Position numbers and translations under genes: made by a program. This document shows, in pieces, positions 10,090-44,064 of a stretch of 64,000 nt of DNA (position 1 is its first letter; each line of letters begins with the position of its first letter). Under the pieces are notes generated by a model, which saw nothing but the letters and a program-made list of their open reading frames with translations, was not told the DNA's origin and did no database searches. Location of the stretch: the IMG/VR virus record IMGVR_UViG_3300005613_000002, positions 1 through 64,000 of that record; one strand, given 5' to 3'.

Positions 10090-10116
10090 AAAAAAAAGCC
10101 AACATATTGTTGGCTT
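10090..10116 (-). terminator. Intrinsic terminator
   Basis: aagccaaca-ta-tgttggctt inverted repeat with U-tract on minus strand. Confidence 0.7.
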
Positions 10117-10150: not shown

Positions 10151-10480
10151 TTATTCTTTATCTATCTTTTTCTTTATTTTTGTAGATTTAGTTGTTACTT
10201 TAGGTGGAGTTTTTTTTCTTACCTTAGATTTAGGTTCGTTATTCATCAGATTGGCAAATTCAGCATCACTAACTTCTACTACGGTGATTAAATTTTCAAC
10301 TCTTAATTTACGTACTGACATCGGTAATGATTTTACTGTTAAATAAATTGATTTACCTGCCTTAATTGTAATTTTTTTTAATGTTAGATTATCAACATAA
10401 CTAATTTCCAATGGTGAATTATGTTTAAAATCACGTTTAGCACTAAGATTTGTTATATTTGTTATTTTATATATATTCAT
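10151..10480 (-). CDS. Hypothetical protein with Lys-rich C-terminus
   Basis: 109-aa ORF in operon packing. Confidence 0.65.
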   Translation of the reverse strand: MNIYKITNITNLSAKRDFKHNSPLEISYVDNLTLKKITIKAGKSIYLTVKSLPMSVRKLRVENLITVVEVSDAEFANLMNNEPKSKVRKKTPPKVTTKSTKIKKKIDKE

Positions 10481-10487
10481 AATATTA

Positions 10488-11318
10488 TTATTTTAGACCT
10501 TGTATTAATGTATCGCCATATTTAATCCCATCAAATCCCATTTTCATTGCTTTTTCAGCTATTGCTTTATTTTTTAGATTTACTGATGGCATATTATATT
10601 GTTGACTTAATTGTTCGAAATTAACATTAGGAAACCATATTTTACTTAATATTTCAACTGGTTCTTGACTATCTTTATATGTTAAACCTAATGAGTTTGT
10701 ATCAAGAAGATTATTAAAATCAATTTGATATTTAGTAAAACCTTTAGCTGGATTTAATGTAAAAAAATTACCAACAACAGAATTTTCTTTAATTGGTTCT
10801 TTTCTATAAGCAATTATTGATTGTTGATTAATGCTTGGTTTTTCTATTTGAACATTAGCATTATCTTCTTCTAATGTATTCAAAAATTGGTTTTCATCAC
10901 CACCATAATTATTAATAGTGTCTTGAACTACTACTTCTTCTAATTCTCTCGATTTTTCATAATCAAAAATATCTTGAATTTTATTTAAAACTCTACAAGC
11001 ATCAGTAACTTCCAAATTAATATGAATTGCTTTTATTGGTTTTTTTACAAACATTGATTTGAAATATCTGTGATGTCCATCACAAATTCCCATTCCATCT
11101 TCTTTATTAGCAAGCCATATTGGGTCTTTATCATCAATTTCACAATTTCCAACTTCATCAGAATAAACAAAATTCTGTAATGGTTTAATATTATCGTCTT
11201 CTGTTGGTGTTATTTCAATTAATTTATAATTAATACCTTCATCATGCAATCCTTCCAATATTACACTGTAAGGTGCTCTTAATTGTGGTAAATGATATGG
11301 TCTTCCGTTCTTTAACAT
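10488..11318 (-). CDS. ParB/Srx-like N-terminal domain plus possible ADP-ribosyltransferase-like C-terminal domain
   Basis: ICDGHHRY (ParB DGHHR motif); C-terminal YR...G.FF...Y...LD...GFDGIKY pattern. Confidence 0.55.
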   Translation of the reverse strand: MLKNGRPYHLPQLRAPYSVILEGLHDEGINYKLIEITPTEDDNIKPLQNFVYSDEVGNCEIDDKDPIWLANKEDGMGICDGHHRYFKSMFVKKPIKAIHINLEVTDACRVLNKIQDIFDYEKSRELEEVVVQDTINNYGGDENQFLNTLEEDNANVQIEKPSINQQSIIAYRKEPIKENSVVGNFFTLNPAKGFTKYQIDFNNLLDTNSLGLTYKDSQEPVEILSKIWFPNVNFEQLSQQYNMPSVNLKNKAIAEKAMKMGFDGIKYGDTLIQGLK

Positions 11319-11339: not shown

Positions 11340-11912
11340 CTACACTATGAATTTTTCAATTTCTTCATTAATAATATTATTTAATTTCTTTGATGATTCC
11401 ATTAAGGAAATTTTATCATTATCAACTAAATATAAATTATACGATATTTCATCAGGTAGCATTGTTTTAATTTTTGTATATTCTGCAATCTTCTCAGGAT
11501 TTTTATCCATATAATCATCATAAACATTAATTTCTTCTAATTCTTGATTATATTGTTCAATCTTTAATATCACATCACCCTTACCTTCATTTCCTCTTTT
11601 TAAAATAATATCATCAACAACAATTCCATGCATATTAAGAATATTTGTAACTTGTGGACGTAATTTTTCCCTTCTCGATGTTAATATTATAACATGAGTA
11701 TCTGGAGTGTTTTTCTCCTTATTTAATTGTGCAAGCACAGTTGGAAATGGGTTAATTTCAAAAATGTCTGTGTTAAGACTTTCCTTACGACCCCACCATC
11801 CAATATGTGGGTATTTTTGTCCAGTTTTTTCACTCCAAATTCTAATTCCTTCTTCTTTAAGTGGACTATCAATTAAACATCCATCAAAATCGAATACTGC
11901 TAATCTTTTCAT
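11340..11912 (-). CDS. HAD-superfamily phosphatase, RNA-repair ('Swiss army knife') type
   Basis: VFDFDGCL motif I, ILTSR motif II, K motif III, VYDD motif IV. Confidence 0.8.
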   Translation of the reverse strand: MKRLAVFDFDGCLIDSPLKEEGIRIWSEKTGQKYPHIGWWGRKESLNTDIFEINPFPTVLAQLNKEKNTPDTHVIILTSRREKLRPQVTNILNMHGIVVDDIILKRGNEGKGDVILKIEQYNQELEEINVYDDYMDKNPEKIAEYTKIKTMLPDEISYNLYLVDNDKISLMESSKKLNNIINEEIEKFIV

Positions 11913-12430
11913 TATTTATAAATTCTTTTATATATTAATTTTTTAAAATCTTCAATAGGAACTTTCACTATAAGGTCTTTACGTCCCACTCTACTATATC
12001 TTCTATAATATTTCAAATTAATTTTACTACAAAATGTAATTGCTTCACCATCTTCTTCATCAGCTTTTTTTATTCCATTTTCAACTAATTCTAATAAATC
12101 AATTCGTTTAACAAATTCAAAACAATCTACATTTTCAAAAGCAATTGTATCCATATATTCAGAACGAATCCACCCTGTTCTACCTATAACGTTAACTAAT
12201 TCAATCCATGCATAACCTAAATTAGTTCCTTCCTTCAAACTTTTAACATCAAAACGTTCATACTTGTTATCCTTAACACACACAACATCCCAATGTTCTA
12301 TCATATTTTGATTTTTTGTTGATAAGAAAGACTTATAATTGTTATTCCCCATCAATTTACAAAATAAAAGTTCACTTTCAGTTCCCTTTCTAGTATCATT
12401 AACTATTTTATTACTTAACCAATTATTCAC
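11912..12430 (-). CDS. Putative PD-(D/E)XK nuclease-fold protein
   Basis: G...E...EHWDV...FDVKS pattern; GTG start overlapping the upstream stop. Confidence 0.5.
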   Translation of the reverse strand: MNNWLSNKIVNDTRKGTESELLFCKLMGNNNYKSFLSTKNQNMIEHWDVVCVKDNKYERFDVKSLKEGTNLGYAWIELVNVIGRTGWIRSEYMDTIAFENVDCFEFVKRIDLLELVENGIKKADEEDGEAITFCSKINLKYYRRYSRVGRKDLIVKVPIEDFKKLIYKRIYK

Positions 12431-15400
12431 TATCCAGTACTTTCAATAAATTCAATTGCTTTTACTGGTATATCTTCAGGAGAAGCATATCTTTTACATG
12501 CTGCTCTATGTGTATAACAATAAAAACCCTTTTTATCTGCACCTAATGATACACCAGCAGATTTTGATGTTTTTTCTGTGAAACCTTTTGGTTTACTTAA
12601 ACCATGAACTCTACCACCTTCATGATAACTTGAACCACCAGTAAGATATTTAGAAATTTTTTCCTTCATATCTTTACTAATGTTTTTTGATCTCATTAAG
12701 GACTCTTTAGTGTTTTTATATTTTGTTTTTTTCTTTGATTCTTGTAATGGTTGTGATTTCATTATTTCAGTCACAACACCTTTTAATTTAAATGAAAACT
12801 GAATCTTTCTCCAATCAGTTAATTTATTAGACATAAATGGTTTCCCACCATTTTTTGTGTTAACAGCTAATGTTACATGAGGTATTTTATTATTTGTTGG
12901 GTAACCTGAAACTCCAACTGCCATAACTTTATCATCTAATCCATAATTAATAACATTAAGTTCAACTTCCTTACCTAAATCTTGTTCATATTTTGGGTCA
13001 ATTCTACCCATATTTAATGTCATATGATGTGCATACTCTTTCCAACCTTCAGGAATCATTTTACCAAACACACTTAACAATTGTTTATGTGATGTTTCAT
13101 CAAGTAATACACAACTATATAAAACATCACCATCCCAATCAGATGATTCTAACATTGTTTCTTGTTTTGATTCATCAAGTTTTAAAATTGTTGCATTTTC
13201 TTCTTTTGTTGAAAAAATTAATTCATTACCAACCATTTCATATTTTTTTGTAAAATCTTTAACATATTTTTTACCTTTACCTTTTTTCACATAAGCAATA
13301 GTTATATGTGGATGATAATTTGGAAATGTTGAAACATTTGGCAATTTTTTCATCACACTATTGATTTTATTTAAAAGTTCAGATTCTACATCAAATTTAA
13401 CAACATCAAAATCTTCATTCTCAAAAATTGATATTTTATTAACTTTAATCTTAATTTCCTTTAAGTCAAAATTTTCCTTATATAAATTGAAAACATCATC
13501 ATTAGTTACATTATCTTTAAATCCATATAATGCAGTAACATGTGGTTCATTTTCAATACCAAATTCACCATTAACCTCATAAATATCATCCTTATCAATT
13601 TTTGATGTCAAGTTACTCCATTTAGGAATATCAAGTGACAACATTAATACACCATATTCAACCTTTTCAGTTTTTGATTCATTTAATGTGACACTAGTAG
13701 ATTCATTTTTATTGACTAAACTTAATAATTCTTCTTTATTATTCAAGACTTTATCATTGTAAACTTTCAATAATAAAGATTTTTGCATATCACCAATTTC
13801 TTTTCCTTTTAAACCAGCATTCATTAAATCATTACCGTTAACGGCTAATTCAGCAGTAGTTTTAGGGTATTTACCCTGTAATAATTCATTTGCTGCATTT
13901 TGTAATTCAGTTGGAATTATTTTACTTTGTAATGATTTTGGTGAAATGACGAACATATTATGAGCTATAGACCTTGCACTAACTTTATTAGTTACATCAT
14001 GACTAAGACCTAAATCTAATGCTCTAATTTCTTTATATGTATCAATATCACCCTTCAAATTATTTTTATAAAATTCAGCAGGATTTTCTAATAATCTAGT
14101 TAATAAATAAATAAACTCACCCATTGTTTTCACTAAATCAAATGGACTTCTATCTATTGTAGATTGTTTAATGTCAAAACCAAATATATTATTAAATAAT
14201 CCAGTATCTTTTAATAATTGTGCACCACTTCTAATATTTCCTTTAGTTACAATTTTATCAAATTCAGTAATAACTCTTTCTGGTGGAATTTCTTTAATTC
14301 TTTCAGAATTTTTTTGAATCATACCCATTGTATTTGGTTCAATCGTAAAATTGAAACGAGATGAAAATTGTACAGCACGTAACATTCTTAATGGGTCATC
14401 AGCAAATGCTTCAGGATTAACAACACGAATTATTTTATTTTTTAAATCTTCTTGACCACCATATGGGTCAATAATATCACCATTAACATCTTTAGCTATC
14501 GCATTAATGGTGAAATCTCTACGTTCTAAATCTTTCTCAATCGGTAATTCATGATCTGAACTAACTTCAAAACCTTTATGACCACCAACACCTGTTGCCT
14601 TTTCTGTTCTTGGAATGGCGATGTCTATATCTTCTGTCGAACCTTTAGGTTTAAATTTTAACACCCCAAACGATTTTCCAACAGCATCAACTCTACCATA
14701 TTTTGATAATAGTTGTTCTAATTTATCAAAAGCAACACCAGTTATTAAGATATCTAAATCTTTAGATTCTTTACCTAAAAAACCATCACGTACAGCACCA
14801 CCAACTGAAAATATTTTCCCACCAAGTTCTTCAACTTCACCCTTAAATGGTAAATCTTCTAATGACATTAAATCTGCTTCATCAATCGTTTTCATTTCAT
14901 TATTTTTTGCAAAGTTATCATTTTCTAAATAACTATCATTATCTTTTGATATTTTTTCATCAAATCTTGCTTCAAAACCTTCATTAATTAAAACATTTCT
15001 GAAATCATATTTAGGGTTTTTTTGTTTTGCTCTCCTTAAAAATTCCTCAAACACTGGCTTACCTTCTTCAATTTTTGGCACATCTTTCCAATATGGGTCT
15101 TCATCAAATCTATCTTCTGGGTCTTTCATCATTACATTAGATTCACCAAGAAAAAAAGCAGTAGAACTACCTAATCTTTGAACTGTGATAAATTCAGTAG
15201 GTAATTTTTTATCCCAACGTTCTACGAAATTTATTAATCCAAGTTTATCTAATTTATCTAATATTACATTATGAACAACATTTGCTGATTCTTCAATATA
15301 TAAATTCCCTTCTTTATCAATTACACCTCTCACATATTGACCAATATTATCCAATGTATTAGGATTTTTTATGATTGTAACATTTTCATCCTTATATACA

Positions 15401-17862
15401 ATCTTTTCACCATCTTCACGGTTTTTTTGTGATTTAAAATCTTTTTCAAAATCATCAAACTCTGGCTTCATTCCATGTCTTCTTTCAAGATATTTATCAC
15501 CAACACCTTCAATATTTAATTCAGGTTCAAGATTATATCGTTTATTAACATATTTTTGTATTGATTCTTCACTATAATCCAATAGTCTACCAATTTCGAT
15601 AGTTATCTCAGGTGATTCATTTTTAAAATAACCACCATAACTTTTTAAAATTTCAACTAATCTTTTAGCCTTTCTTTCTGCTTCTGGTGTATCACGATAA
15701 ATAATTCTTCTATCATCATTATGGTTTGTTTGTTCAATTGGTATATCTTTAAATTGATTATTTATTATCGCATATTTTAAATAAGTACTATTAATTCCCT
15801 TTAAATTAAAGAAACCAACATCTTTTTTACCATTAACCATTGCAGCCATTGCATCTTTAGCATGATATGCTTCCGAAGCATCTATTGTTTCTTTCAGTGG
15901 TTTAATATTAAGGTTACTAATATCTCCTTGATTACAAGCAACACTTGTATTACCAAGACCACCTAACTTACATTTATCTTTTACTTCAACACTACTACTA
16001 CCTTTCATTGAAGAAGTAATACGTTCACTCATAATAAAACTATCAGAAGTAGCATCATCAACATGGTTATATTCTAAATCTTCAGCATACATTGCAGAAT
16101 TTGCTTTTAAATCATTTTCAATTGAAGGTGATGTGTCAGTTATATCATATGATGGAAAACCATCATTACCAATATTACCATCTGTAGAATATAAAGCAGT
16201 CCCATCTTCATCAACATTTAATTGTTCTGGTTGTTTATCTGATGTATTATAATAATTTCCAAATCCAACATCAAAAAAACCAATACTACCATCTTTTTTA
16301 TAACCTAAATTTTTTGGACTATAAAAATCAGTACTTTCAGAACCATATTTTTGTAATTCCTCAAATATTTTCAACAAACTAAAAAAGAATGTACCATCTT
16401 CGGTATTCTTATTAAAATAATTATCAATATCACTTTTATTAACTTTACCAACATATTTAGTGTTATGAAAATATTCTTCAAGAGCAATTCTATAATTAAT
16501 ATTAAATATATTATCAAACACATAATTCAATCTGTTTAACATTTTTTCAAAATATGGTACGTCTGTTTTTAGCTTTTCTAAAATAATCACATAATAATCT
16601 TTATCACCTTCTGTTTTTATTGAATAAACTTTATATGGTTCTGCAATATATTTTAATTCTTTGCCAATCAATGATAAATTCTCATAAGCTTCACTTCTAT
16701 CTGATGTTACTTTTAAAACTAAATTATTTCCAATATCATATGCTGAACCAAATGAACCTGAATCCATATATTCAAGAGTTACACCATATTTTTCAGCAAC
16801 TACATTAGCTATTTTATCAGCTAAATTCCTTTCAATACCTTCATTAATTGATTTTTTCTTTTCAATTATTTCAATTTTATTTAATGGTTCTCTATTATAA
16901 AATCCTAATTTAATTAAATGATCTTGTAGTGTAATTAAATTATTATAAAACTTTTTCTTATCTTTCGCAACATTAAGATTTTCTTTAATATTATTTACAA
17001 CAGCATGTAAATTTTCAACCATATATGGGACAGCACCCAATGGTTGTGTAGTTAAATTATCATTGTTTGATACAAAATGTACAAAATCTTCATTAATCAC
17101 ACTATCATTATCACCATCATCAACACTATATGGTACTTGCGCCCACATTCCATGACGAACTTCCCAAGTATTCCCTATGTCTGAAAGTATATCATCATTA
17201 CCATCAGCAAAATTATATAATTCATACATTTGATTTTTTTTATTTCTTAATGGATTATAATGTGTATTATATACTTCATCATTTAAACCATAATCAGTTA
17301 ATACTATTGTTGGTTGACCATATCTTAATACTTCACCATATGTACTTGGTCTACCCATATCACCAACCTCTTGGCTATAGTTATTAACGAATTCTATAAG
17401 TTCCATAACAAACTCATTCTCATGCATTTCTTCTTCAACACCAGCATCAAGAGTAAATAAATCCTTATCTCTCCAATTTTTTTGGTCATTTCTTTTTAAA
17501 TAATAAAGTAACGAGTTTAAATCTGGAATACCTGTTAATTCTTTAATTCTACTTTGAGTAACTTTTTTTGCTTTTTCTGAAAGAATCCAAGTATATTGAT
17601 TTTCATCAAAATCAAATACTTTTGTAACTATATCTTGAGTATCTTGATATGTACCAGCACCAGATTCGGCTTCATTTTGTGCTTGACCTTTAGGGTTTTT
17701 TGCTAATTTTAACACTACCTTATCATCAATATCATAAACTGCTCTACCAGTACCACTACCAATTTTAGTTAATTTTGCATTAGCATGTTTTATCTTACCG
17801 TTAAACGATCTAATATTTTGGATTTCGTTGATAAAATTATCAACATATTCATTATATATCAT
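12430..17862 (-). CDS. 1810-aa multidomain protein: two kinase-like domains, class II CCA-adding/poly(A) polymerase domain, two 2H phosphoesterase domains, small C-terminal domain
   Basis: Kinase 1: IGSGTGR, VLK, GD, DYG. Kinase 2: DSGSFG, VLK, TDF..KN, FFDVG. NTase: GGAVRD, DLD, RRDFTINA, DDPLRMLRA. 2H: HVT/HIT and HMT/HVT pairs. Confidence 0.88.
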   Translation of the reverse strand: MIYNEYVDNFINEIQNIRSFNGKIKHANAKLTKIGSGTGRAVYDIDDKVVLKLAKNPKGQAQNEAESGAGTYQDTQDIVTKVFDFDENQYTWILSEKAKKVTQSRIKELTGIPDLNSLLYYLKRNDQKNWRDKDLFTLDAGVEEEMHENEFVMELIEFVNNYSQEVGDMGRPSTYGEVLRYGQPTIVLTDYGLNDEVYNTHYNPLRNKKNQMYELYNFADGNDDILSDIGNTWEVRHGMWAQVPYSVDDGDNDSVINEDFVHFVSNNDNLTTQPLGAVPYMVENLHAVVNNIKENLNVAKDKKKFYNNLITLQDHLIKLGFYNREPLNKIEIIEKKKSINEGIERNLADKIANVVAEKYGVTLEYMDSGSFGSAYDIGNNLVLKVTSDRSEAYENLSLIGKELKYIAEPYKVYSIKTEGDKDYYVIILEKLKTDVPYFEKMLNRLNYVFDNIFNINYRIALEEYFHNTKYVGKVNKSDIDNYFNKNTEDGTFFFSLLKIFEELQKYGSESTDFYSPKNLGYKKDGSIGFFDVGFGNYYNTSDKQPEQLNVDEDGTALYSTDGNIGNDGFPSYDITDTSPSIENDLKANSAMYAEDLEYNHVDDATSDSFIMSERITSSMKGSSSVEVKDKCKLGGLGNTSVACNQGDISNLNIKPLKETIDASEAYHAKDAMAAMVNGKKDVGFFNLKGINSTYLKYAIINNQFKDIPIEQTNHNDDRRIIYRDTPEAERKAKRLVEILKSYGGYFKNESPEITIEIGRLLDYSEESIQKYVNKRYNLEPELNIEGVGDKYLERRHGMKPEFDDFEKDFKSQKNREDGEKIVYKDENVTIIKNPNTLDNIGQYVRGVIDKEGNLYIEESANVVHNVILDKLDKLGLINFVERWDKKLPTEFITVQRLGSSTAFFLGESNVMMKDPEDRFDEDPYWKDVPKIEEGKPVFEEFLRRAKQKNPKYDFRNVLINEGFEARFDEKISKDNDSYLENDNFAKNNEMKTIDEADLMSLEDLPFKGEVEELGGKIFSVGGAVRDGFLGKESKDLDILITGVAFDKLEQLLSKYGRVDAVGKSFGVLKFKPKGSTEDIDIAIPRTEKATGVGGHKGFEVSSDHELPIEKDLERRDFTINAIAKDVNGDIIDPYGGQEDLKNKIIRVVNPEAFADDPLRMLRAVQFSSRFNFTIEPNTMGMIQKNSERIKEIPPERVITEFDKIVTKGNIRSGAQLLKDTGLFNNIFGFDIKQSTIDRSPFDLVKTMGEFIYLLTRLLENPAEFYKNNLKGDIDTYKEIRALDLGLSHDVTNKVSARSIAHNMFVISPKSLQSKIIPTELQNAANELLQGKYPKTTAELAVNGNDLMNAGLKGKEIGDMQKSLLLKVYNDKVLNNKEELLSLVNKNESTSVTLNESKTEKVEYGVLMLSLDIPKWSNLTSKIDKDDIYEVNGEFGIENEPHVTALYGFKDNVTNDDVFNLYKENFDLKEIKIKVNKISIFENEDFDVVKFDVESELLNKINSVMKKLPNVSTFPNYHPHITIAYVKKGKGKKYVKDFTKKYEMVGNELIFSTKEENATILKLDESKQETMLESSDWDGDVLYSCVLLDETSHKQLLSVFGKMIPEGWKEYAHHMTLNMGRIDPKYEQDLGKEVELNVINYGLDDKVMAVGVSGYPTNNKIPHVTLAVNTKNGGKPFMSNKLTDWRKIQFSFKLKGVVTEIMKSQPLQESKKKTKYKNTKESLMRSKNISKDMKEKISKYLTGGSSYHEGGRVHGLSKPKGFTEKTSKSAGVSLGADKKGFYCYTHRAACKRYASPEDIPVKAIEFIESTG

Positions 17863-17888: not shown

Positions 17889-17913
17889 ATTATTATAGAT
17901 AAAAAGAGAAATT

Positions 17914-17943
17914 AAAAAAGCCAGATAATTATCTGGCTTTTTT
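17914..17943. terminator. Intrinsic terminator, probably bidirectional
   Basis: aaaaaagccagata-at-tatctggctttttt. Confidence 0.8.
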
Positions 17944-17950
17944 AATTTTT

Positions 17951-19855: not shown

Positions 19856-20644
19856 CTATTCATATTTTACAAAAACCAGCGTGATATATTCTATTAAATG
19901 TGGTACTGTATCTAAATAATCAATTTCACTAATGTCATACCAACCATAATTGGTGTTCTCTTTATCTAAATTTATATCAGAATCATCACCATCAAATCTA
20001 CAAGCAAAAATATGTTCAATACTATCAGAATTTCGTTGTATAGTGAAAGATTTAACAAATTTATTTATTTCTAAATCAGTTTCTTCTTTAATTTCTCTAG
20101 CACATGCTTTTTCTGGTCTTTCACCTTTATCAATCCCACCTCCAACTAATGACCATTTTTTCGGCATCCAACTTTTAGGATAATCTGACCTTTTTAAAAG
20201 AAGAATTTTATTATCCTTATTCATTATAACTGCAACCACATTTTTTGTTGGTTCTTTTTTCTTTTTCTTCTTTGTTGTTTCAGTTAATCTTGGTGTTTGA
20301 TGTGGTTTTAAATCAGTATTCGGATTTCTAGTTATCTGTCTTTTAGTATCTTTAGACCTATCCACAGCATCTCTATCAGCATTTAATGTTCTATCAATAA
20401 ATGATTTCATTAATTCACCACCAGCTAAATTATATTGAGCATTATTATCATTATCTGAATTATAATAATCAAAAAAGTTTTTCAATCTTTTCATTGATTG
20501 ATAAGTAATTTCACCATTTTTTAACATAAATTTAGCACGTTTAACGCCCTCACCATTTGGATTTGATACTAATGTGGTTTGAATTAAATTCAATATTTCA
20601 GGTGGAATCTTATATGTGTTATTATATAGTTCTTTATTAGCCAT
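19856..20644 (-). CDS. Nudix hydrolase with extra N-terminal domain
   Basis: Nudix box GGIDKGE-RPEKACA-REIKEETDL (GX5EX7REUXEE). Confidence 0.9.
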   Translation of the reverse strand: MANKELYNNTYKIPPEILNLIQTTLVSNPNGEGVKRAKFMLKNGEITYQSMKRLKNFFDYYNSDNDNNAQYNLAGGELMKSFIDRTLNADRDAVDRSKDTKRQITRNPNTDLKPHQTPRLTETTKKKKKKEPTKNVVAVIMNKDNKILLLKRSDYPKSWMPKKWSLVGGGIDKGERPEKACAREIKEETDLEINKFVKSFTIQRNSDSIEHIFACRFDGDDSDINLDKENTNYGWYDISEIDYLDTVPHLIEYITLVFVKYE

Positions 20645-21287: not shown

Positions 21288-24200
21288 TTAAATTCCGTAA
21301 TCAACTTCAAAATCAGAATTATCTGGTTCATTTGCTTTTTCAACTTTATCAATATACATTTCAATCGTTTTAATTACTTCATCACCCATTGCTACTTTTA
21401 ATTTATCAAAAGTGTCATATTCTTTTGGTATATTAAATGCTTCAACAAATTCATTATAGAATTTATCATAATCATAGACATAGGGTTTCTCTACCTCAAC
21501 ATCTGGAAGCACATTATCAATTTCAACTGTTTTTATTTCTTTTAATTCTTCAATATTTTCATCATTCTTAATATATTTCTTATCTAATTCAATCTCAATA
21601 TCGCTTTTAGGTATTTCTATATCTGACCTAACTATTTCCATAAATATCCCATTATACGCACCAACATGATAAGCACTACCTTTTTTAATTAAAACTAAAT
21701 CACCCTTAGTGTAATCATCATTTATTGATTTAATACTAGGCTTCTTCAATTTTATCATCTTTTCATTAAGAAATTTTAACGCATTATCATAAACTTCATA
21801 ATGAACTTTATAATCATCATACATTTTAAAACCATCCCACACTTTTCTTGGGTCATAACCACTTTTATTCCAAAAATCAACTTCAACATGTTCTAAATGT
21901 AATGATTCATCAACACTATCTAAATCATAATTTTTCAATTGTAATTGATCTGAAGTAAATAATTCTTTAATTAAATCACCTTTATTTTTACCCTTTTTTT
22001 CAGTTCTAATTAATATTTTTTCAGCAATTTCAGGGTCAAATCCTGAAATCAACGAACCAATTTTCTTCGAAGTATAACCAACTCTACTATTAAATGCATC
22101 AAGATATTTCTCATAATTATAAGTGCCAGTCATATTTGGGTTTTCCAGTAAATCTTCAGCACTAATTAAAGCTGATGCAAATCTCATTTCGCCAGTTTCT
22201 TTGTCTTTAATCATTTTCGAATCACCATGTGATTTAACATAGCCTGTATTAATATAGTAAACAGTAGAATCTAATTCTGGTTCAGGTGGCATATAATTAA
22301 TGATTAATTTCATTTTATCATCAGGACTTAGTTCACTATCATCAGCATTGAATCCAATATCACCTTTATGTTTTTCAAATAATTCAACCGCTTGTTTTTC
22401 ACGTTGTTGGATTAATAGTTCCATATGAGCTTGCATCCCTTTTTCTCTACCATTTTTATCTTTTCCCCTATGCTTATATGCTGTTAATGTTTGTTTTACT
22501 TTACTCTTACTTGCGATTTTTTTCAATGGAATTTGCATGTATCTTATATCCTCAACATACTTATGATAATAATCAACAAATTCCTTTCCTTTACCATGTA
22601 AAATTAAATCAAAACCATTATCAAGAAATTCTTCAATATATTCCGACATAGTTTTAGATTTAATGGTATTACCAGTTAATTTGATTTTCTCCTTCATTTC
22701 ACCAGTTTTTTTATCCTTATATTCTGAAAGTAAGGCATAATTAATTCTAGCAAGATTCAAACAACTAATAAATTCACCATCATCATCAACTGCCATATAT
22801 GGTTTAGGCATTTCTTCCTCGTTAAATTTTTCAATAAGTGCTTGAATACCTGTTTCACCTTTATATTGCCACATTTCATCAATAGGTCTTTCATTTTCTT
22901 CTATTACTGTTTTATCATCTCTAACTCTAATATTTGATAATTCAGGAATTTGGAAATTTACACCATCAGTTACCGCCAATAATGGAATACAACCATAATC
23001 ATTAAACCATTTAATTGCATGTCTCAATTGAATTCGTGCAACACAAGTAATTCTACCAGCACAAATATTATCAGACCAGTTAAAACTTATGTGAGAACCT
23101 AACGCACCAAATAATGAGTTATTCAAAATTTTAATCGGTAATTGTTTAACTTTAAATTTTGCTCTATCTTCTGGAGTAAGCGTACCTTCTTTAAATTTAA
23201 TATATGCTTCATGGTCAATCTCTGCCAATAATTTTATTTCTTCCTCATTAAGTTCAAGATATGCTGCTAATTTCTTATAAATATTACGAGTTGTTGTCAT
23301 ATATAACAACATTTTTTCCATAACAGCAGTAATATCAAACATTGGGAATACCCTATCGGTTAATTGAATCATTGGATACAATGATGCATAATCAATCTTG
23401 ATAATTCTTTCTGAATAACCCTTTTTAAATGTTCTAGCTAAACCACCACTAAAATGTTCATAAGTATCAGGTATTGGTACAGCTAAATCATTCTCATAAC
23501 TCCATGCAGTCAACAATAAATTCCAAATAGATGCAGTACCCATCGTACATACACGATGAAAATTGGTAGGAACTATTTTAGCCAACATAAATGATGATTG
23601 ATTATATAATTCATCAACCTGTTCAGTTTCCCATAAATCATCAAGTAGGTATTGTCTAAGTAATATTTTACCACTAATAAACGTAATTTTTTTATTTGGT
23701 AGTGCTTCTTTTCTAAACCACTCAACAAATTCTTTATCAGCAGAAAGATATTTCTTTTTAAATTCTAAATGCTTTTCATCACTTAAAATCTTTTTATTAG
23801 CTTGAAGCTTATACATTTTCCTGCCTGTTTCTTGGAATTCATCAGGAATTTGTATGTACTCATTATTACTTTCATTAACCAAAAAAACTTTATTTTCAGA
23901 ATAAAACTTACCAATTGAATTATCTTCTCCTTTTATGTAAGTCCTATTTGGTTTAGCAATTTTTTCATATTTTGCGATATTTTTTAAGCCAACTGATTTA
24001 ATTTCAGTATTCATAGCAGCAGTTTTTTTTGCTGCGTGCATAATATCAATAATTGAATAACCCCACATTTCTGTAGCAGTATATTTATCAGCATTATTTC
24101 CGTACTTAACAGAAGTATTTCCTTTTCTACGTAATTTTGCTTTTGGGTTTAATCCAACAGGTAATGCGTTAATATCCATTCCTAGAATTTCTGCTCTACC

Positions 24201-24983
24201 CAAAATATAATCAAAATCAAAATTTTCTGAGTTATATCCTGCAATAATTGCAGGTCTTTTCAATTCGATTAAATTAAAAAAATCTTGAATTAATCTGATT
24301 TCTGATTCATCATCATCAATTTTATCGACCTCTAACACAATATTCAAATCTCGATTATCTTTAACACCAATAGCAAACATTCTCGAAATTTGATATCTTA
24401 AACCAGTTGTTTCAATATCAAAAGTAATTCTATGTACATCTTTATATTCCTCTAAACCTTTAAATAATCTTGATTTAGTTGAAATAAAAAATTGGTCAGT
24501 TGTTTTTAGTGTATGAAATAAATCACGATTTGGATAAACGAAATCACCATTATTCTTTTTCAGAAATTTACCACGTTCATCTTTAGCTTTTTCATATGGA
24601 TTTATCCCACCATTTTTAATGAAATCAAGAATATGTTTATATGATTTATTTGATGTTAATTTATAACAATATCCATCAGTTAATCTTTGCTGATTACCTG
24701 TTTTTAATTTAGTGATAGTAACACCAAACAAATTCTGCATACTCTTAAAACGTTCATCAGAATATCCATCATAGAATTTATGACCAGTTTTGGATAAATC
24801 TTTCATATACATGAAAGGTTCATATCTAACATCTATAATTTTCTTTTCTTTATTAGGTTCATGAATGACGCATTTTGCAACATTAGTCCTAGAATCAGTT
24901 TCTACATTAACTAAATATTTTAAGTCATCATTATAACCTTCAAGAAAACCTTTTATTTCACCTAATACATTTAATTTATCCAT
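21288..24983 (-). CDS. Family B DNA polymerase with 3'-5' exonuclease
   Basis: ExoI FDIETTG, ExoII YNSENFD, ExoIII YLLDD, motif A DYASLYP, motif B K...NSLFG, motif C AVTDG. Confidence 0.93.
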   Translation of the reverse strand: MDKLNVLGEIKGFLEGYNDDLKYLVNVETDSRTNVAKCVIHEPNKEKKIIDVRYEPFMYMKDLSKTGHKFYDGYSDERFKSMQNLFGVTITKLKTGNQQRLTDGYCYKLTSNKSYKHILDFIKNGGINPYEKAKDERGKFLKKNNGDFVYPNRDLFHTLKTTDQFFISTKSRLFKGLEEYKDVHRITFDIETTGLRYQISRMFAIGVKDNRDLNIVLEVDKIDDDESEIRLIQDFFNLIELKRPAIIAGYNSENFDFDYILGRAEILGMDINALPVGLNPKAKLRRKGNTSVKYGNNADKYTATEMWGYSIIDIMHAAKKTAAMNTEIKSVGLKNIAKYEKIAKPNRTYIKGEDNSIGKFYSENKVFLVNESNNEYIQIPDEFQETGRKMYKLQANKKILSDEKHLEFKKKYLSADKEFVEWFRKEALPNKKITFISGKILLRQYLLDDLWETEQVDELYNQSSFMLAKIVPTNFHRVCTMGTASIWNLLLTAWSYENDLAVPIPDTYEHFSGGLARTFKKGYSERIIKIDYASLYPMIQLTDRVFPMFDITAVMEKMLLYMTTTRNIYKKLAAYLELNEEEIKLLAEIDHEAYIKFKEGTLTPEDRAKFKVKQLPIKILNNSLFGALGSHISFNWSDNICAGRITCVARIQLRHAIKWFNDYGCIPLLAVTDGVNFQIPELSNIRVRDDKTVIEENERPIDEMWQYKGETGIQALIEKFNEEEMPKPYMAVDDDGEFISCLNLARINYALLSEYKDKKTGEMKEKIKLTGNTIKSKTMSEYIEEFLDNGFDLILHGKGKEFVDYYHKYVEDIRYMQIPLKKIASKSKVKQTLTAYKHRGKDKNGREKGMQAHMELLIQQREKQAVELFEKHKGDIGFNADDSELSPDDKMKLIINYMPPEPELDSTVYYINTGYVKSHGDSKMIKDKETGEMRFASALISAEDLLENPNMTGTYNYEKYLDAFNSRVGYTSKKIGSLISGFDPEIAEKILIRTEKKGKNKGDLIKELFTSDQLQLKNYDLDSVDESLHLEHVEVDFWNKSGYDPRKVWDGFKMYDDYKVHYEVYDNALKFLNEKMIKLKKPSIKSINDDYTKGDLVLIKKGSAYHVGAYNGIFMEIVRSDIEIPKSDIEIELDKKYIKNDENIEELKEIKTVEIDNVLPDVEVEKPYVYDYDKFYNEFVEAFNIPKEYDTFDKLKVAMGDEVIKTIEMYIDKVEKANEPDNSDFEVDYGI

Positions 24984-24988
24984 TTATT

Positions 24989-25912
24989 TTATATATAATT
25001 TTCACTACCAATTAGACATTCTGAATTACTTAATGAAATTGAAATCTTATCCGACTTTATTTCAACACTAGCATCACCATCATTTGATGGCATTGGGTCT
25101 GAATTATATTTTGATGATTCTTTATTCAACATTTCTTCTTCAGCCATTATTTGTTCTCTTTTTTTCATATAGTCCTCACCATTTTCATCGACAACCCTAT
25201 AACCATGTCTATGTATTTCATTAACTTTGTCATGTAACATTTGTTCCTTGTAATTTTCAGGATAATTATTAGACTCATAATAATTAGTGGAAATTATTGT
25301 TTTACATGGAATACAACAACAACACGGTTTATATTCAATAAATTCATTATCTTTTGTTGATTCAATAATACGTGGATTTTCACAAGTATATATTAAATCC
25401 ATATATTTTTTCGGTAAATCTTTAGCCATTTGCCATTTTTTCATTTTTGATAATGGAAACACCAAAGGTATCATTTTATCACAAATAGATTGATATGATT
25501 TATAAATTTTTTTTATATCATTTAAATATGGAATTGCGTCATCATTGGAAACGTATCCAATTTGTATTTCATCCACCTTTAAACTTTGTAAAAAAACAAC
25601 ACCAAACATCCAAATTGGTATCTGTTTAAAATATAAACTATCTTCACAAATATTAACATTCACACTTGCAGCATATTCAACATCATGTAGCAACTTTTCA
25701 TCACATTTATATGTATCATCATTAGAATTGAATTCATCTTGAAATTCTTTCATTAATAAACCAACACGATTCTTTTCCATCATGACTTTATTATAATTGT
25801 TTTGAATTTCAATATAAATCGGAATTACAGTATTTCCATCCTTTAAATTTTTCCATACCAAATAGGTAGAATCTAACCCACTTGAAAATAAAATAGCAAC
25901 TCTTTTACTCAT
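24989..25912 (-). CDS. queC: 7-cyano-7-deazaguanine synthase-like PP-loop ATPase
   Basis: ILFSSGLDST PP-loop; FPL..MKK; TC...PCCCCIPC Zn-binding motif. Confidence 0.72.
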   Translation of the reverse strand: MSKRVAILFSSGLDSTYLVWKNLKDGNTVIPIYIEIQNNYNKVMMEKNRVGLLMKEFQDEFNSNDDTYKCDEKLLHDVEYAASVNVNICEDSLYFKQIPIWMFGVVFLQSLKVDEIQIGYVSNDDAIPYLNDIKKIYKSYQSICDKMIPLVFPLSKMKKWQMAKDLPKKYMDLIYTCENPRIIESTKDNEFIEYKPCCCCIPCKTIISTNYYESNNYPENYKEQMLHDKVNEIHRHGYRVVDENGEDYMKKREQIMAEEEMLNKESSKYNSDPMPSNDGDASVEIKSDKISISLSNSECLIGSENYI

Positions 25913-43176: not shown

Positions 43177-43329
43177 GGGAATATTTTTAAAGTATTTGTT
43201 GCTTTTTGTGTGCAAGTTTTAACGACTTGTGACTTTACCGTTTGTCTATATCCCCAATTTTATTTTTTATTGGTGGGGATAGAAGGATTCGAACCTTCAA
43301 TAATTACTGTAAACACTTATAGTTTTCCC
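43177..43329 (-). ncRNA. Y-RNA-like element C: circularly permuted tRNA (T arm-acceptor 3'-CCA-spacer-acceptor 5'-D arm-anticodon arm) inside the conserved stem
   Basis: GAAGG-UUCGAAU-CCUUC-UAUCCCC-ACCA (43298-43271) precedes GGGGAUA-UA-GAC...GUC-A-CAAGU-CGUUAAA-ACUUG (43255-43213). Confidence 0.8.
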
Positions 43330-43467: not shown

Positions 43468-43602
43468 TGGGGAGAATCGGATTCGAACCGATAATCTATT
43501 GATTTCAACTCAATTGCTTTAACCTATTACTGTAAACACTAATAGTTCTCTTTTAAAGAGTAATGAGATAGTATTATTTGTTTTTGTTTTTGCTATCTCC
43601 CC
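43468..43602 (-). ncRNA. tRNA-like element B with the conserved stem inserted in the D-arm (anticodon-loop triplet UGA)
   Basis: 7-bp GGGGAGA/UCUCCCC acceptor, AUUGA/UCAAU anticodon stem, AUCGG-UUCGAAU-CCGAU T arm; about 62-nt insertion after C11. Confidence 0.75.
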
Positions 43603-43835
43603 ATTTATTAAATCCTGTAATTTTAATTAATACTTTATGTTTCTCTCTTTTCAGTAGCGTACATATCTCGTTAATCCTAAATTACAGAATTATTTTTTTA
43701 AATCTAAGCACCATGCCATTTCATAGGTATTAAAACCGCCAAAATTGGGGGTCTGCTTAAATTTATTTCATTATTTTAAAGAACTTTAAGCCAGTTACGT
43801 TTACATAAAGTAAAGAGGCTTTACTGACTATCATG

Positions 43836-43923
43836 TAGCGGGAGAGGGATTCGAACCCCCGTTAAACCTTATTCAGGACTCCGTGCTTATGAGACAGGTG
43901 AGATACCGCTTCTCCATCCCGCA
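43836..43923 (-). tRNA. tRNA with CAU anticodon (Met or Ile2) and a 20-nt variable arm; no encoded CCA
   Basis: UGCGGGA/UCCCGCU acceptor, GAG/CUC D stem, CUCAUAA loop, GGGGG-UUCGAAU-CCCUC T arm. Confidence 0.75.
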
Positions 43924-43937
43924 ATATATTTTTTATA

Positions 43938-44064
43938 AAAGGATAGTTTATTTGTTATATGTTGTTTTTACAAAGTTGGATTTGAACCAACGGCATACTG
44001 CTTATAAGGCAATCACTCTAACCGACTGAGTTATTTGTTACTGTAATAACAATTAGTTTCCTTT
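43938..44064 (-). ncRNA. Element A: tRNA-Ile(UAU)-like cloverleaf (43967-44040) whose acceptor stem is extended by the conserved stem
   Basis: ACUC/GAGU D stem, AUUGC-CUUAUAA-GCAGU, GUUGG-UUCAAAU-CCAAC; outer AAAGGA/UCCUUU and UUGUUAU/AUAACAA pairs. Confidence 0.8.

Follow-up and report, generated by a model that had tools for sequence, protein, structure and literature searches.

Does the 1810-residue protein encoded at this phage locus serve RNA repair, does it act on proteins of the host or phage, or does it combine the two? The window, by which we mean the whole stretch of 64,000 nucleotides analysed, is part of a 321 kb phage genome. A sequence-only reading had proposed an RNA-repair cluster, with two kinases, a CCA-adding enzyme and two 2H phosphoesterases in one polyprotein, accompanied by a HAD phosphatase. 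One part of that proposal stands: the class II CCA enzyme, the pair of 2H domains and the HAD phosphatase are genuine, with catalytic motifs intact, and they are genetically coupled. The kinases and the other N-terminal domains, however, do not fit. We favour, with a probability of roughly 0.55, a protein in which a C-terminal tRNA-end unit and an N-terminal polyvalent-like unit share one polypeptide.

The giant ORF (12430..17862(-), ATG start) is a genuine single gene and is also one gene call in the public assembly. At a GC content of ~27% stop codons make up ~8% of random codons and so, by simple arithmetic, 1810 codons would remain open by chance with a probability of ~1e-70. The nucleotide ranges proposed earlier were converted to residues and each was examined; all the listed domains were found in place. 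The term polyprotein is unsupported because the giant protein has no protease domain. The sequence-only reading was silent on residues 537-997, which hold an NleE-like domain and another without a recognisable match, and on a small domain at the extreme C-terminus.

The class II CCA-adding or poly(A) polymerase placed at 13710-14870 (residues 997-1384) is confirmed by profile matches, and we assign it to residues about 1005-1395 (13678..14850(-)), comprising head, neck, body and tail. The region matches Pfam PolyA_pol (E 2.9e-22) and the RNA-binding domain (E 3e-15), and CCA-adding enzymes are the top matches in the PDB (E 4e-30). The NCBIfam model for CCA tRNA nucleotidyltransferase is covered from position 17 to 394 of 396 with 168 bits, compared with 108 bits for PcnB and 77 bits for A-adding enzymes. 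This score falls under the NCBIfam equivalog cut-offs, so that specificity for CCA, as opposed to A alone or poly(A), is putative. Across 34 relatives the motifs GGxVRD, DxD, RRD..N, DPxxG, DDPLR and ER..E do not vary, and no other part of the giant protein is as well conserved as this region (70-78% identity).

The head domain is homologous to that of E. coli Cca (NCBIfam NF008137, E 8e-46), a class II CCA enzyme carrying an HD domain. The latter reportedly displays 2',3'-cyclic phosphodiesterase, 2'-nucleotidase and phosphatase activities, in work attributed to Yakunin et al. in 2004. In both systems a single gene product or operon would bring CCA addition together with phosphatase and cyclic-phosphodiesterase chemistry. 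Unlike E. coli Cca, the phage would draw its end-cleaning from a pair of 2H domains plus a stand-alone HAD enzyme, non-homologous to HD, and its CCA part is fused to about 1000 residues of kinase and other modules.

Both 2H domains proposed, at 13205-13665 and 12765-13130, are present with their paired histidine motifs. The first (residues 1400-1560, 13183..13665(-)) carries H1441xT and H1519xT, the second (residues 1570-1705, 12748..13155(-)) H1613xT and H1662xT. The second is the core component, found in 53 loci, mostly as the exact C-terminus or as its own gene just before that for HAD. It resembles the CPD of fungal tRNA ligases; Pfam tRNA_lig_CPD is the sole match in 33 of 34 orthologs, and HHxT and HxTxA are invariant. 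In this it resembles the CPD of fungal and plant Trl1 (LIG-KIN-CPD), although the giant protein has no ligase domain. The first 2H domain is an accessory, present in 24 of the 78 related loci fetched. Beyond the second lies the small domain (phrog_3666, residues about 1735-1810, 12433..12660(-)), which ends the polypeptide in every one of the 23 predicted proteins that bear it.

The first 2H domain is LigT/ThpR-like and Acb1-like, and bears directly on an alternative. The giant protein may be strictly a polyvalent counter-defence effector, packaged or made early, whose domains work on host targets independently of one another. In the manner of Acb1, the 2H domains would then destroy nucleotide-based immune signals (2'-5' or cyclic oligonucleotides) instead of healing RNA ends, HAD and a Nudix hydrolase would clear the nucleotide products, and the CCA enzyme would be an independent passenger. 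Pfam Acb1, the anti-CBASS 2H family, matches this domain with 28 bits (cut-off 27) and likewise matches all 35 orthologs, at best with E 8.7e-11; solved Acb1 structures match with E 1e-3. However, RNA cyclic phosphodiesterases of LigT/ThpR type match equally well or better, and the domain, unlike Acb1, is embedded beside a CCA enzyme. Since the Acb1 match is as consistent as that to LigT, a role for the first 2H domain in degrading immune signals is possible. Exactly such a function was predicted for 2H domains of polyvalent proteins by Iyer et al. 2017 (PMC5512222). For the protein as a whole we consider this explanation unlikely: the core 2H domain matches the tRNA-ligase CPD family only, the supposed passenger is the best-conserved part, and 2H without CCA is almost never found. 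Among 143 N-terminally anchored relatives, 75 of the 78 that bear 2H also bear CCA.

The HAD phosphatase (11340..11912(-)) lies two genes downstream, as had been noted, separated by one 172-residue ORF (11912..12430(-)) with a one-base overlap with both neighbours. The intervening ORF, a candidate for a PD-(D/E)xK nuclease fold, is sporadic, occurring in only nine related loci. The order of giant ORF then HAD is seen in 51. Conserved HAD residues are D8xD10, T/S78, K111 and D132-D133 (motifs I-IV). The enzyme is of the Swiss-army-knife RNA-repair type (Pfam HAD_SAK_1), a family said to originate with Burroughs and Aravind in 2016. HAD_SAK_1 matches 20 of 20 orthologs (best E 3.8e-11); the window's own copy, at 23.4 bits, falls slightly short of the Pfam cut-off (25.6) and in motif I has Cys in place of the Thr found in most orthologs. 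There is also a weak match to a T4-Pnkp-type PHROG. Membership of an RNA-repair-associated family argues against the counter-defence explanation. The family is the predicted linear phosphatase of jumbo-phage RNA repair, where it is likewise stand-alone (PMC7824862), but here the conserved partner is the giant kinase-CCA-2H protein and not an RNA ligase or polynucleotide kinase encoded alongside.

Terminator-like hairpins enclose a predicted transcription unit of giant ORF, 172-residue ORF, HAD and two conserved downstream partners, orf276 and orf109 (10151..11318(-)). One hairpin (17909..17948(-)) is directly upstream of the giant ORF, where the new unit starts, and the other (10096..10116(-)) follows orf109, where it ends. 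The Nudix hydrolase (262 residues, 19856..20644(-)), whose upstream position is conserved in 59 related loci, sits in a separate unit. Baseplate genes 6-8 kb away are in keeping with a counter-defence effector; the replication genes on the other flank are not.

What might the CCA enzyme act on? Three tRNA-like RNAs without encoded CCA had been suggested as substrates. ARAGORN and Rfam confirm two of these (43835..44040(-)), Met-CAT at 43835-43923 (89 nt) and Ile-TAT at 43967-44040, whereas the third (43476-43531) is only a partial tRNA-like match, whose 28.8 bits fall just short of the gathering score (29). The suggestion is plausible but too narrow, as the genome encodes 46 tRNAs and a tmRNA, and 43 of the 46 tRNAs, most of them outside the window, lack an encoded CCA; only three possess it.

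Such numbers suit another explanation, pure housekeeping, in which the CCA enzyme only matures these tRNAs, 2H and HAD belong to unrelated nucleotide metabolism, and damaged RNA is not repaired. Phages commonly encode CCA enzymes that stand alone (PMC7824862), and the CCA gene is kept in tRNA-rich relatives and missing from a tRNA-poor one. Complete relatives with the CCA gene have 34-55 tRNAs, and 10 where that gene stands alone elsewhere; the sole complete relative without CCA, 2H and HAD has three, a correlation that depends on one CCA-less genome and on genomes that are related and not independent. Only four tRNAs are seen in a relative, 91% complete, whose giant ORF does bear CCA. We judge this explanation quite improbable since it leaves unexplained why 2H is almost always accompanied by CCA, as well as the conserved, adjacent Swiss-army-knife-type HAD. 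It also fails to account for relative G003, where CCA and the second 2H domain form a separate 531-residue ORF between the kinase ORF and HAD, which indicates that the two constitute an independent module. In addition, cyclic phosphates are not a normal product of primary 3' processing of tRNAs.

The N-terminal half is a different matter. The kinase-like domains assigned to 17280-17780 (residues 28-194) and 16255-16790 (residues 357-536) are confirmed by fold and by conserved residues, each with G-loop, Lys, Glu, Asp and D(Y/V)G. Module A (residues 1-335, 16858..17862(-)) has a kinase core at about 28-200, followed by a segment that is conserved although disordered (206-254) and then by a helical extension. 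Of its residues, G35, G37, K52, E66, D168, S173 and D190-Y-G are shared without exception by 40 relatives. Module B (residues about 345-550, 16213..16830(-)) has just the N-lobe, catalytic loop and DVG, with G372, K384, E391, D512, N518 and D531 conserved. In both, the residues for ATP binding and phosphotransfer are intact and the C-lobe is missing. Identity is only about 30-68% (mean column identity 47% in the 40 relatives), and no Pfam, PHROG or PDB sequence model matched either domain in profile searches. Ser/Thr protein kinases are the best structural neighbours.

Could these kinases phosphorylate RNA 5'-OH ends for ligation, making all the domains one RNA-repair knife as first proposed? 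The protein-kinase-like fold does include small-molecule kinases, with APH(2'') and MTR kinase among the Foldseek matches, loss of the C-lobe takes away the usual peptide-binding platform, and kinases and second 2H domain occur together even in relatives that lack CCA (L051, L062). Nevertheless we know of no RNA 5'-kinase with a protein-kinase fold; T4 Pnkp, Trl1 KIN and Clp1 are P-loop enzymes. A protein-kinase fold without C-lobe rules out a P-loop polynucleotide kinase and implies that these two domains are not the source of the 5'-kinase step in known RNA repair. A P-loop AAA_33 kinase is encoded elsewhere in the genome, as are Rnl1-like and Rnl2-like ligases, reminiscent of the T4 Pnkp/Rnl1 pathway but 120-250 kb away. 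With protein-modifying domains, including the NleE-like one, adjoining the kinases, the all-repair model is very doubtful.

Module C (residues 601-785, 15508..16062(-)) has a conserved Cys motif, K..C..GG..C-N-Q-G-D, at 628-647, then an alpha/beta domain (about 655-779) resembling the NleE cysteine methyltransferase and DUF2023 (PDB 4r29, 2guk). It covers only NleE residues about 82-220, and the Cys motif ahead of it is phage-specific. This fold also matches small proteins named 'hemocin immunity', so the domain may serve in binding and not as a methyltransferase. Module D (residues about 786-985, 14908..15507(-)) is confidently modelled, although fold comparison gave no recognisable match; among relatives there are also stand-alone versions of about 190 residues and tandem copies. 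These two domains, about 460 residues, have no known tie to RNA repair, and the N-terminal ~1000 residues as a whole are outside any known RNA-repair kit.

The polyvalent proteins of phages and conjugative elements, described by Iyer, Burroughs, Anand, de Souza and Aravind, offer a close comparison. Their components include C-lobe-less Ser/Thr/Tyr-type kinases, Pol-beta NTases, 2H, GNAT, ART and ParB (PMC5512222). Like them, the giant phage polypeptide joins disparate enzymatic domains, and its relatives are strongly mosaic. Because those relatives shuffle modules with ART-PolyVal, GNAT, NlpC/P60 and ParB, as well as NleE, Pfam domains, we regard a polyvalent-like role as most likely for the N-terminal unit; the same mosaicism is compatible with the counter-defence effector. 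Unlike polyvalent proteins, however, the giant protein has no MuF, portal, metallopeptidase or processing peptidase domain, the Pfam Kinase-PolyVal model did not match its kinases, and its NTase is a full tRNA CCA-adding enzyme ('CCA' occurs 0 times in PMC5512222). The first two of these points also count against the counter-defence effector. Iyer et al. argue that polyvalent 2H domains are not repair enzymes, being without association with RNA ligases. At the present locus too, the ligases are distant.

Returning to our favoured reading, we infer the following activities, substrates and order of steps. A 2H phosphodiesterase, with the Trl1-CPD-like second domain as core enzyme, would open the 2',3'-cyclic phosphate at a tRNA end. 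The resulting monophosphate would be taken off by the Swiss-army-knife-type HAD, a step assigned to this enzyme because the genome, in a departure from the Trl1 pathway, has no Tpt1 for 2'-phosphate removal; RtcB was not found either. The class II enzyme would then add or rebuild CCA. Routine clients would be the phage's own tRNAs, and damaged phage or host tRNAs may be handled in the same way, with anticodon-loop breaks passing to the ligases and P-loop kinase encoded elsewhere. The scheme offers no explanation for the persistent fusion of repair enzymes to kinases.

The domain combination, unfamiliar to the sequence-only reading, is indeed absent from the literature searched, as is any description of the family, yet it is common in metagenomic jumbo phages. 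With more than 2000 related proteins and about 60 syntenic jumbo-phage contigs, the family is large, and its members identify a syntenic locus shared by AT-rich jumbo phages (about 300-370 kb) of an uncultured clade. For the phage analysed here it is plausible, judging from sequence, that the C-terminal half and the co-transcribed HAD form a module for tRNA 3'-end maturation or repair, while the N-terminal ~1000 residues most likely act on host or phage proteins in the style of polyvalent proteins.

The giant ORF (12430..17862, minus strand) encodes 1810 amino acids, with a CCA domain (residues ~1005–1395), two 2H domains and a terminal domain in its C-terminal part and modules A–D in the N-terminal ~1000 residues. 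It is an uninterrupted frame and a single gene call in the source assembly. The base composition implies that about 8% of random codons would be stops at this GC content (~27%), so that a chance open frame of 1810 codons is astronomically unlikely; a chance or fused frame is also ruled out by its retention as a gene in some 60 syntenic contigs. The source record is 321,624 bp in length with direct terminal repeats and a completeness estimate of 100%. The window represents the first 64 kb and nearly all of its genes lie on the minus strand. No close cultured relative of the phage was found. The closest matches of the DNA polymerase are only to Salinibacter phages, at 26% identity, and residues 1–1000 of the giant protein match only two Xanthomonas jumbo phages, at 28–30% identity across one kinase domain. 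A QueC-like gene of the 7-deazaguanine pathway (24989–25912, minus strand) is placed between those for a family B DNA polymerase (21288–24983, minus strand) and a primase/helicase (25925–28750, minus strand), which suggests that the phage modifies its DNA.

The CCA domain matches the Pfam PolyA_pol head at residues 1018–1146 (E 2.9e-22), together with its RNA-binding domain, and passes the gathering score with 79.8 against 23. Class II motifs A–E (GGxVRD, DxD, RRD, D..G, (E/D)DxxR and ER..E) are all present and invariant in 34 relatives, and the best PDB alignments are with solved CCA-adding enzymes (E 4e-30). The domain covers positions 17–394 of the 396 in the NCBIfam CCA tRNA nucleotidyltransferase model PRK13299 and human TRNT1 chains align to residues 1017–1385, indicating a full head-neck-body-tail enzyme, not a bare nucleotidyltransferase head. 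In the ranking of NCBIfam models CCA addition leads with 168 bits, below the equivalog cut-off of 290, followed by PcnB (108) and A-adding (77). Such scores favour, and do not establish, a CCA-adding specificity over A-only, CC-only or poly(A) addition. No other part of the family is as well conserved: identity here is 70–78%, as against some 30–68% for modules A and B, where the mean column identity is 47%.

Each 2H domain displays two H-x-T motifs, beginning at His1441 and His1519 in the first (residues 1400–1560) and at His1613 and His1662 in the second (residues 1570–1705), and these are conserved in alignments A3 and A4. The second domain matches Pfam tRNA_lig_CPD at residues 1604–1688 with 32–38 bits against a cut-off of 23, over only positions 135–222 of the 250 in the profile. 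Thirty-three of 34 orthologs match this fungal tRNA-ligase CPD family and no other 2H family; a profile search of PDB sequences with this domain gave no match. The first domain, at residues 1439–1540, matches LigT, 2_5_RNA_ligase2 and Acb1, and also the ThpR NCBIfam model. The Pfam scores are 28 bits for Acb1 and 26.6–31.3 for 2_5_RNA_ligase2, both against a cut-off of 27, and LigT-type (best E 8.5e-14) and Acb1 (best E 8.7e-11) models each match 35 of 35 orthologs. Among PDB entries the LigT-like PH0099 (1vdx) aligns with E 3e-5 and Acb1 with E 1e-3. A class II CCA-adding or poly(A) polymerase followed by two 2H phosphoesterases, as the sequence-only reading had proposed, is thus borne out by Pfam matches and intact motifs.

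The Acb1 matches of the first 2H domain support the main rival explanation, that the 2H domains have a strictly polyvalent, signal-degrading role, as does an argument that polyvalent-type 2H domains do not accompany ligases (Iyer et al. 2017, PMC5512222). For the first domain, cyclic oligonucleotides and RNA ends with a 2′,3′-cyclic phosphate are both candidate substrates. We judge the signal-degrading role unlikely and prefer one in the healing of RNA ends. The genome also encodes two ligases elsewhere, an Rnl1-like one within the tRNA region and an Rnl2-like one; RtcB and Tpt1 are absent from the genome. The C-terminal domain (phrog_3666, residues 1735–1810, window positions 12433–12660) forms the exact C-terminus of all 23 predicted carrier proteins and is also found, as a hypothetical protein in its own right, in the Bacillus phages Internexus and Goe21. 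A role as a targeting or docking tail is possible.

The product of the HAD gene (11340..11912, minus strand) has the sequence DFDGC at residues 8–12. It scores 23.4 bits against HAD_SAK_1, under the cut-off of 25.6, and also matches a T4-Pnkp-type PHROG. All 20 orthologs match HAD_SAK_1 (best E 3.8e-11) and HAD motifs I–IV are conserved among them (D8xD10, T/S78, K111 and DD132–133). The HAD domain assigned here from sequence is real. HAD_SAK_1 is listed as a stand-alone linear phosphatase of jumbo-phage RNA repair (Iyer et al. 2021, PMC7824862). A prediction of a complex between the second 2H domain and the HAD protein gave scores of 0.00, 0.50 and 0.00, which are neutral as to binding.

One terminator-like hairpin (17948–17909, minus strand) is directly upstream of the giant ORF and another (10116–10096, minus strand) marks the other end of a unit comprising the giant ORF, orf172, the HAD gene, orf276 and orf109; eight such sites are observed in the region compared to 1.9 expected. 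The first three of these genes are joined by one-base overlaps. The 172-aa product of orf172 (11912–12430, minus strand) carries an E..D..DxK pattern, and the atlas clusters closest to it are similar to two nuclease folds, NOV_C and PDDEXK_5 (T7 gp5.3-like). It occurs in nine of the 78 related loci fetched from IMG/VR and may have entered the operon as a mobile or accessory nuclease. The gene orf276 (10488–11318, minus strand) adjoins the HAD gene in 52 loci. An invariant D-G-H-(H)-R motif in its product recalls ParB/Srx (sulfiredoxin-fold) domains, an assignment that found no support in Pfam scans of 16 orthologs or a PDB profile search. Upstream, a Nudix hydrolase that is extended at its N-terminus by ~120 residues (19856–20644, minus strand) is conserved in 59 related loci. 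Its best NCBIfam match, sub-threshold, is RNA pyrophosphohydrolase (RppH).

Relatives are numerous. When residues 1–1000 were searched against 1.84 billion cluster representatives, 2184 proteins fell within E<=0.001 and 202 of them within E<=1e-30, and a word-index search recovered more than 155 long relatives of 1000–2900 residues, many on contigs of 300–366 kb. By domain-wise phmmer searches, this region resolves into the four modules A–D, each of them mobile. Approximately 60 of the 78 IMG/VR loci share the gene order orf208, Nudix, orf79, orf300, orf227, giant ORF, HAD, orf276, orf109 and glycosyltransferase. Across the 78, the NleE-like module is found in 59 loci, CCA in 57, the second 2H domain in 53, HAD in 51, the first 2H domain in 24, module D in 23 and the C-terminal domain in 16. 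All of 143 N-terminally anchored relatives keep the modules that they have in the order A-B(-B)-C(-D)-CCA-2H. CCA is included in 109 of them, and 75 of the 78 with a 2H domain also have CCA. In one related genome (G003) the kinase ORF closes with module C, and CCA and the second 2H domain are encoded by an ORF of their own (531 aa), followed by HAD, whilst another (G001) has a stand-alone CCA gene elsewhere. These arrangements indicate that fusion of kinase and CCA domains is not obligatory.

Residues 1–1000 gave no match in Pfam, PHROGs, NCBIfam or PDB sequence searches, and the kinase-like stretches were therefore assessed by predicted structure. An AlphaFold model of residues 1–600, based on a 40-sequence alignment, has a mean pLDDT of 75.5. 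Foldseek matched it to MAP kinases, ULK1, APH(2'') and the TYK2 tandem kinase at a probability of 1.0, and among Swiss-Prot models the tandem kinases JAK, RSK and GCN2 are matched across module A (residues 1–335) and module B (residues ~345–550). In alignment A1 both domains keep the G-loop glycines, the β3 lysine, the αC glutamate, the catalytic aspartate and the aspartate of D(Y/V)G, and the conserved columns map onto the matching structural elements of Ser/Thr/Tyr protein kinases. Domain A has serine in place of the expected catalytic-loop asparagine. The structural alignments end at about residue 155 of CDK2-type kinases, leaving out the C-lobe (activation segment, APE and αF–αI). On this modelling the two domains are probably active phosphotransferases with a protein-kinase fold that lacks the C-lobe, a kind of truncation also described for the kinases of polyvalent proteins (Iyer et al. 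2017, PMC5512222). Neither Pkinase (PF00069) nor Kinase-PolyVal (PF18762) has a match anywhere in the genome at E<=1; we therefore treat the domains as a distinct sequence family and claim membership of neither.

The sequence-only reading had assigned two kinase-like domains to an RNA-repair polyprotein. The domains are real, in common with every other range it had given (by sequence models for CCA, 2H and HAD, by structure for the kinases), and polynucleotide kinases are rejected on grounds of fold: both model as protein kinases and not as a P-loop NTPase with a Walker A motif. The only AAA_33 P-loop kinase in the genome is encoded by a separate 163-aa ORF at 94.9 kb. The term polyprotein is also dropped, since the giant protein has no protease domain and there is no evidence of cleavage. 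Residues 206–254 and 552–600 (window positions ~17101–17247 and 16063–16209) are predicted to be disordered, with pLDDT <50, yet are strongly conserved in 40 relatives, for example as ...EDG.A.FST...IG.D.FP.Y...DTSPSI... Such stretches might serve for docking, be sites of cleavage or become folded when a partner binds.

Module C (residues 601–785) has an NleE/DUF2023-like fold, which is known elsewhere from a bacterial effector whose targets are host cells. Matches to the fold also include small proteins under the name ‘hemocin immunity protein’, at 30–32% identity. Assignment as an NleE-type cysteine methyltransferase would call for the fold together with the SAM-binding residues Arg107, Glu191 and Tyr212; module C is a candidate methyltransferase or binding domain. 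Preceding the NleE-like domain, at residues 628–647 (window positions ~15922–15981), is a cysteine motif, K-x-x-C-x-L-G-G-x-G-x-T-S-x-A-C-N-Q-G-D, invariant in 37 of 37 aligned relatives. Module D (residues ~786–985) gives a confident structure model for which Foldseek against PDB, VIA-wide, AFDB clusters, an ESM Atlas fold search and an atlas feature search returned only uncharacterised matches. It also exists as stand-alone proteins of ~190 residues and as tandem copies in relatives; a stand-alone paralogue, in a 194-aa frame, is encoded at 171,495–171,908 (plus strand) of the whole genome, outside the window.

How does the giant protein compare with known systems? With at least eight modules, and dozens of architectures among 143 relatives, it resembles the polyvalent proteins (Iyer et al. 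2017) in that a single phage polypeptide unites enzymatic domains of unrelated kinds, and in the mosaicism of its relatives. The signature domains Kinase-PolyVal, ART-PolyVal, LPDs, MuF and metallopeptidase gave no match in the giant protein itself; of these, ART-PolyVal occurs in relatives. Since relatives swap the modules of the N-terminal part with ART-PolyVal, GNAT, NlpC/P60 and ParB domains, this part would represent polyvalent-protein-like effector or regulatory modules. A further mark of polyvalent proteins is delivery with the DNA, as judged by virion packaging and a late-gene context; the locus has baseplate genes 6–8 kb away on one side and Nudix and DNA polymerase genes on the other. 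The C-terminal part, as a combination of CCA, 2H and HAD, has a non-homologous counterpart in the ‘multifunctional CCA addition/repair’ enzyme of bacteria. In that enzyme the phosphodiesterase- and phosphatase-type chemistry predicted here comes from an HD domain.

Bacterial defence systems favour tRNA as a target, and jumbo phages bring extensive tRNA sets of their own. Here 46 tRNA genes and a tmRNA are encoded, most of them at 122–160 kb, and CCA is encoded in only three of the 46. Three tRNA-like RNAs in the window had been proposed as substrates; two are tRNAs, one of them the CCA-less tRNA-Ile(TAT) at 43967–44040, and the third is a sub-threshold tRNA-like match. Among related, complete genomes, six with a CCA gene at this locus or elsewhere (G003, G004, G005, G011, G012 and G013) have 34, 34, 42, 48, 54 and 55 tRNA genes, respectively. 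G001, with its stand-alone CCA gene and no HAD at the locus, has 10, and G002, complete by its direct terminal repeats and devoid of CCA, 2H and HAD, has three. A 91%-complete record with CCA and only four detected tRNAs is a counter-example. That CCA presence tracks the size of the tRNA arsenal is suggestive only, the comparison being among related genomes with a single one lacking CCA.

Several features of the tRNA complement may be recorded. A 37-kb region outside the window (122,564–159,617 of the whole genome) holds 44 tRNAs and the tmRNA (132,007–132,367). At 159,544–159,617 is an amber-suppressor-type tRNA with anticodon CUA (CTA), labelled Pyl by ARAGORN, which may point to TAG being reassigned in part of the genome. 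In the window, tRNA-Met(CAT) (43835–43923, minus strand) is 89 nt long, a length that an insertion, intron or long arm might explain. With 28.8 bits, a partial tRNA-like element (43476–43531, minus strand) falls narrowly short of the Rfam threshold, and a permuted-tmRNA-like match (43247–43298, minus strand) is weak, at 23.8 bits against a threshold of 47.

Our preferred reading, to which we assign a probability of about 0.55, is that the CCA and 2H domains and the HAD protein constitute a module for tRNA 3′-end maturation and healing. A 2H domain would open the 2′,3′-cyclic phosphate, HAD would take off the remaining phosphate and the CCA enzyme would then add or rebuild CCA. A far-reaching extension, which we consider very doubtful, makes the whole giant protein one tRNA-centred machine in place of a set of independent effectors. 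The kinases would act on RNA or tRNA-bound factors, for instance as RNA-end kinases of a new class or as tRNA-damage sensors and regulators, and with the 2H domains, HAD and the conserved neighbouring Nudix they would restore attacked tRNA 3′ ends and so shield the ~46 phage tRNAs. The threats would be host attacks in which the CCA end is cut or blocked chemically, and might include tRNases that leave cyclic phosphates and toxins that pyrophosphorylate.

Phage CCA enzymes, Swiss-army-knife-type HADs, 2H domains and polyvalent proteins are already known. The literature searched holds no description of truncated kinases, an NleE-like domain and a CCA/2H unit at one jumbo-phage locus, nor of an apparent link between such a family and large tRNA arsenals. 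In one clade of uncultured jumbo phages a CCA-adding enzyme is kept hard-wired to predicted cyclic-phosphate- and phosphate-removing enzymes, and the locus offers a concrete, testable system for the way in which a phage matures and defends its own tRNAs. The N-terminal half adds a sequence-novel, minimal protein-kinase-fold family, an NleE/DUF2023-like domain and the widespread domain D, all unannotated and present in over 2000 metagenome proteins. Should the kinases act on RNA or the translation apparatus, this would be new enzymology.
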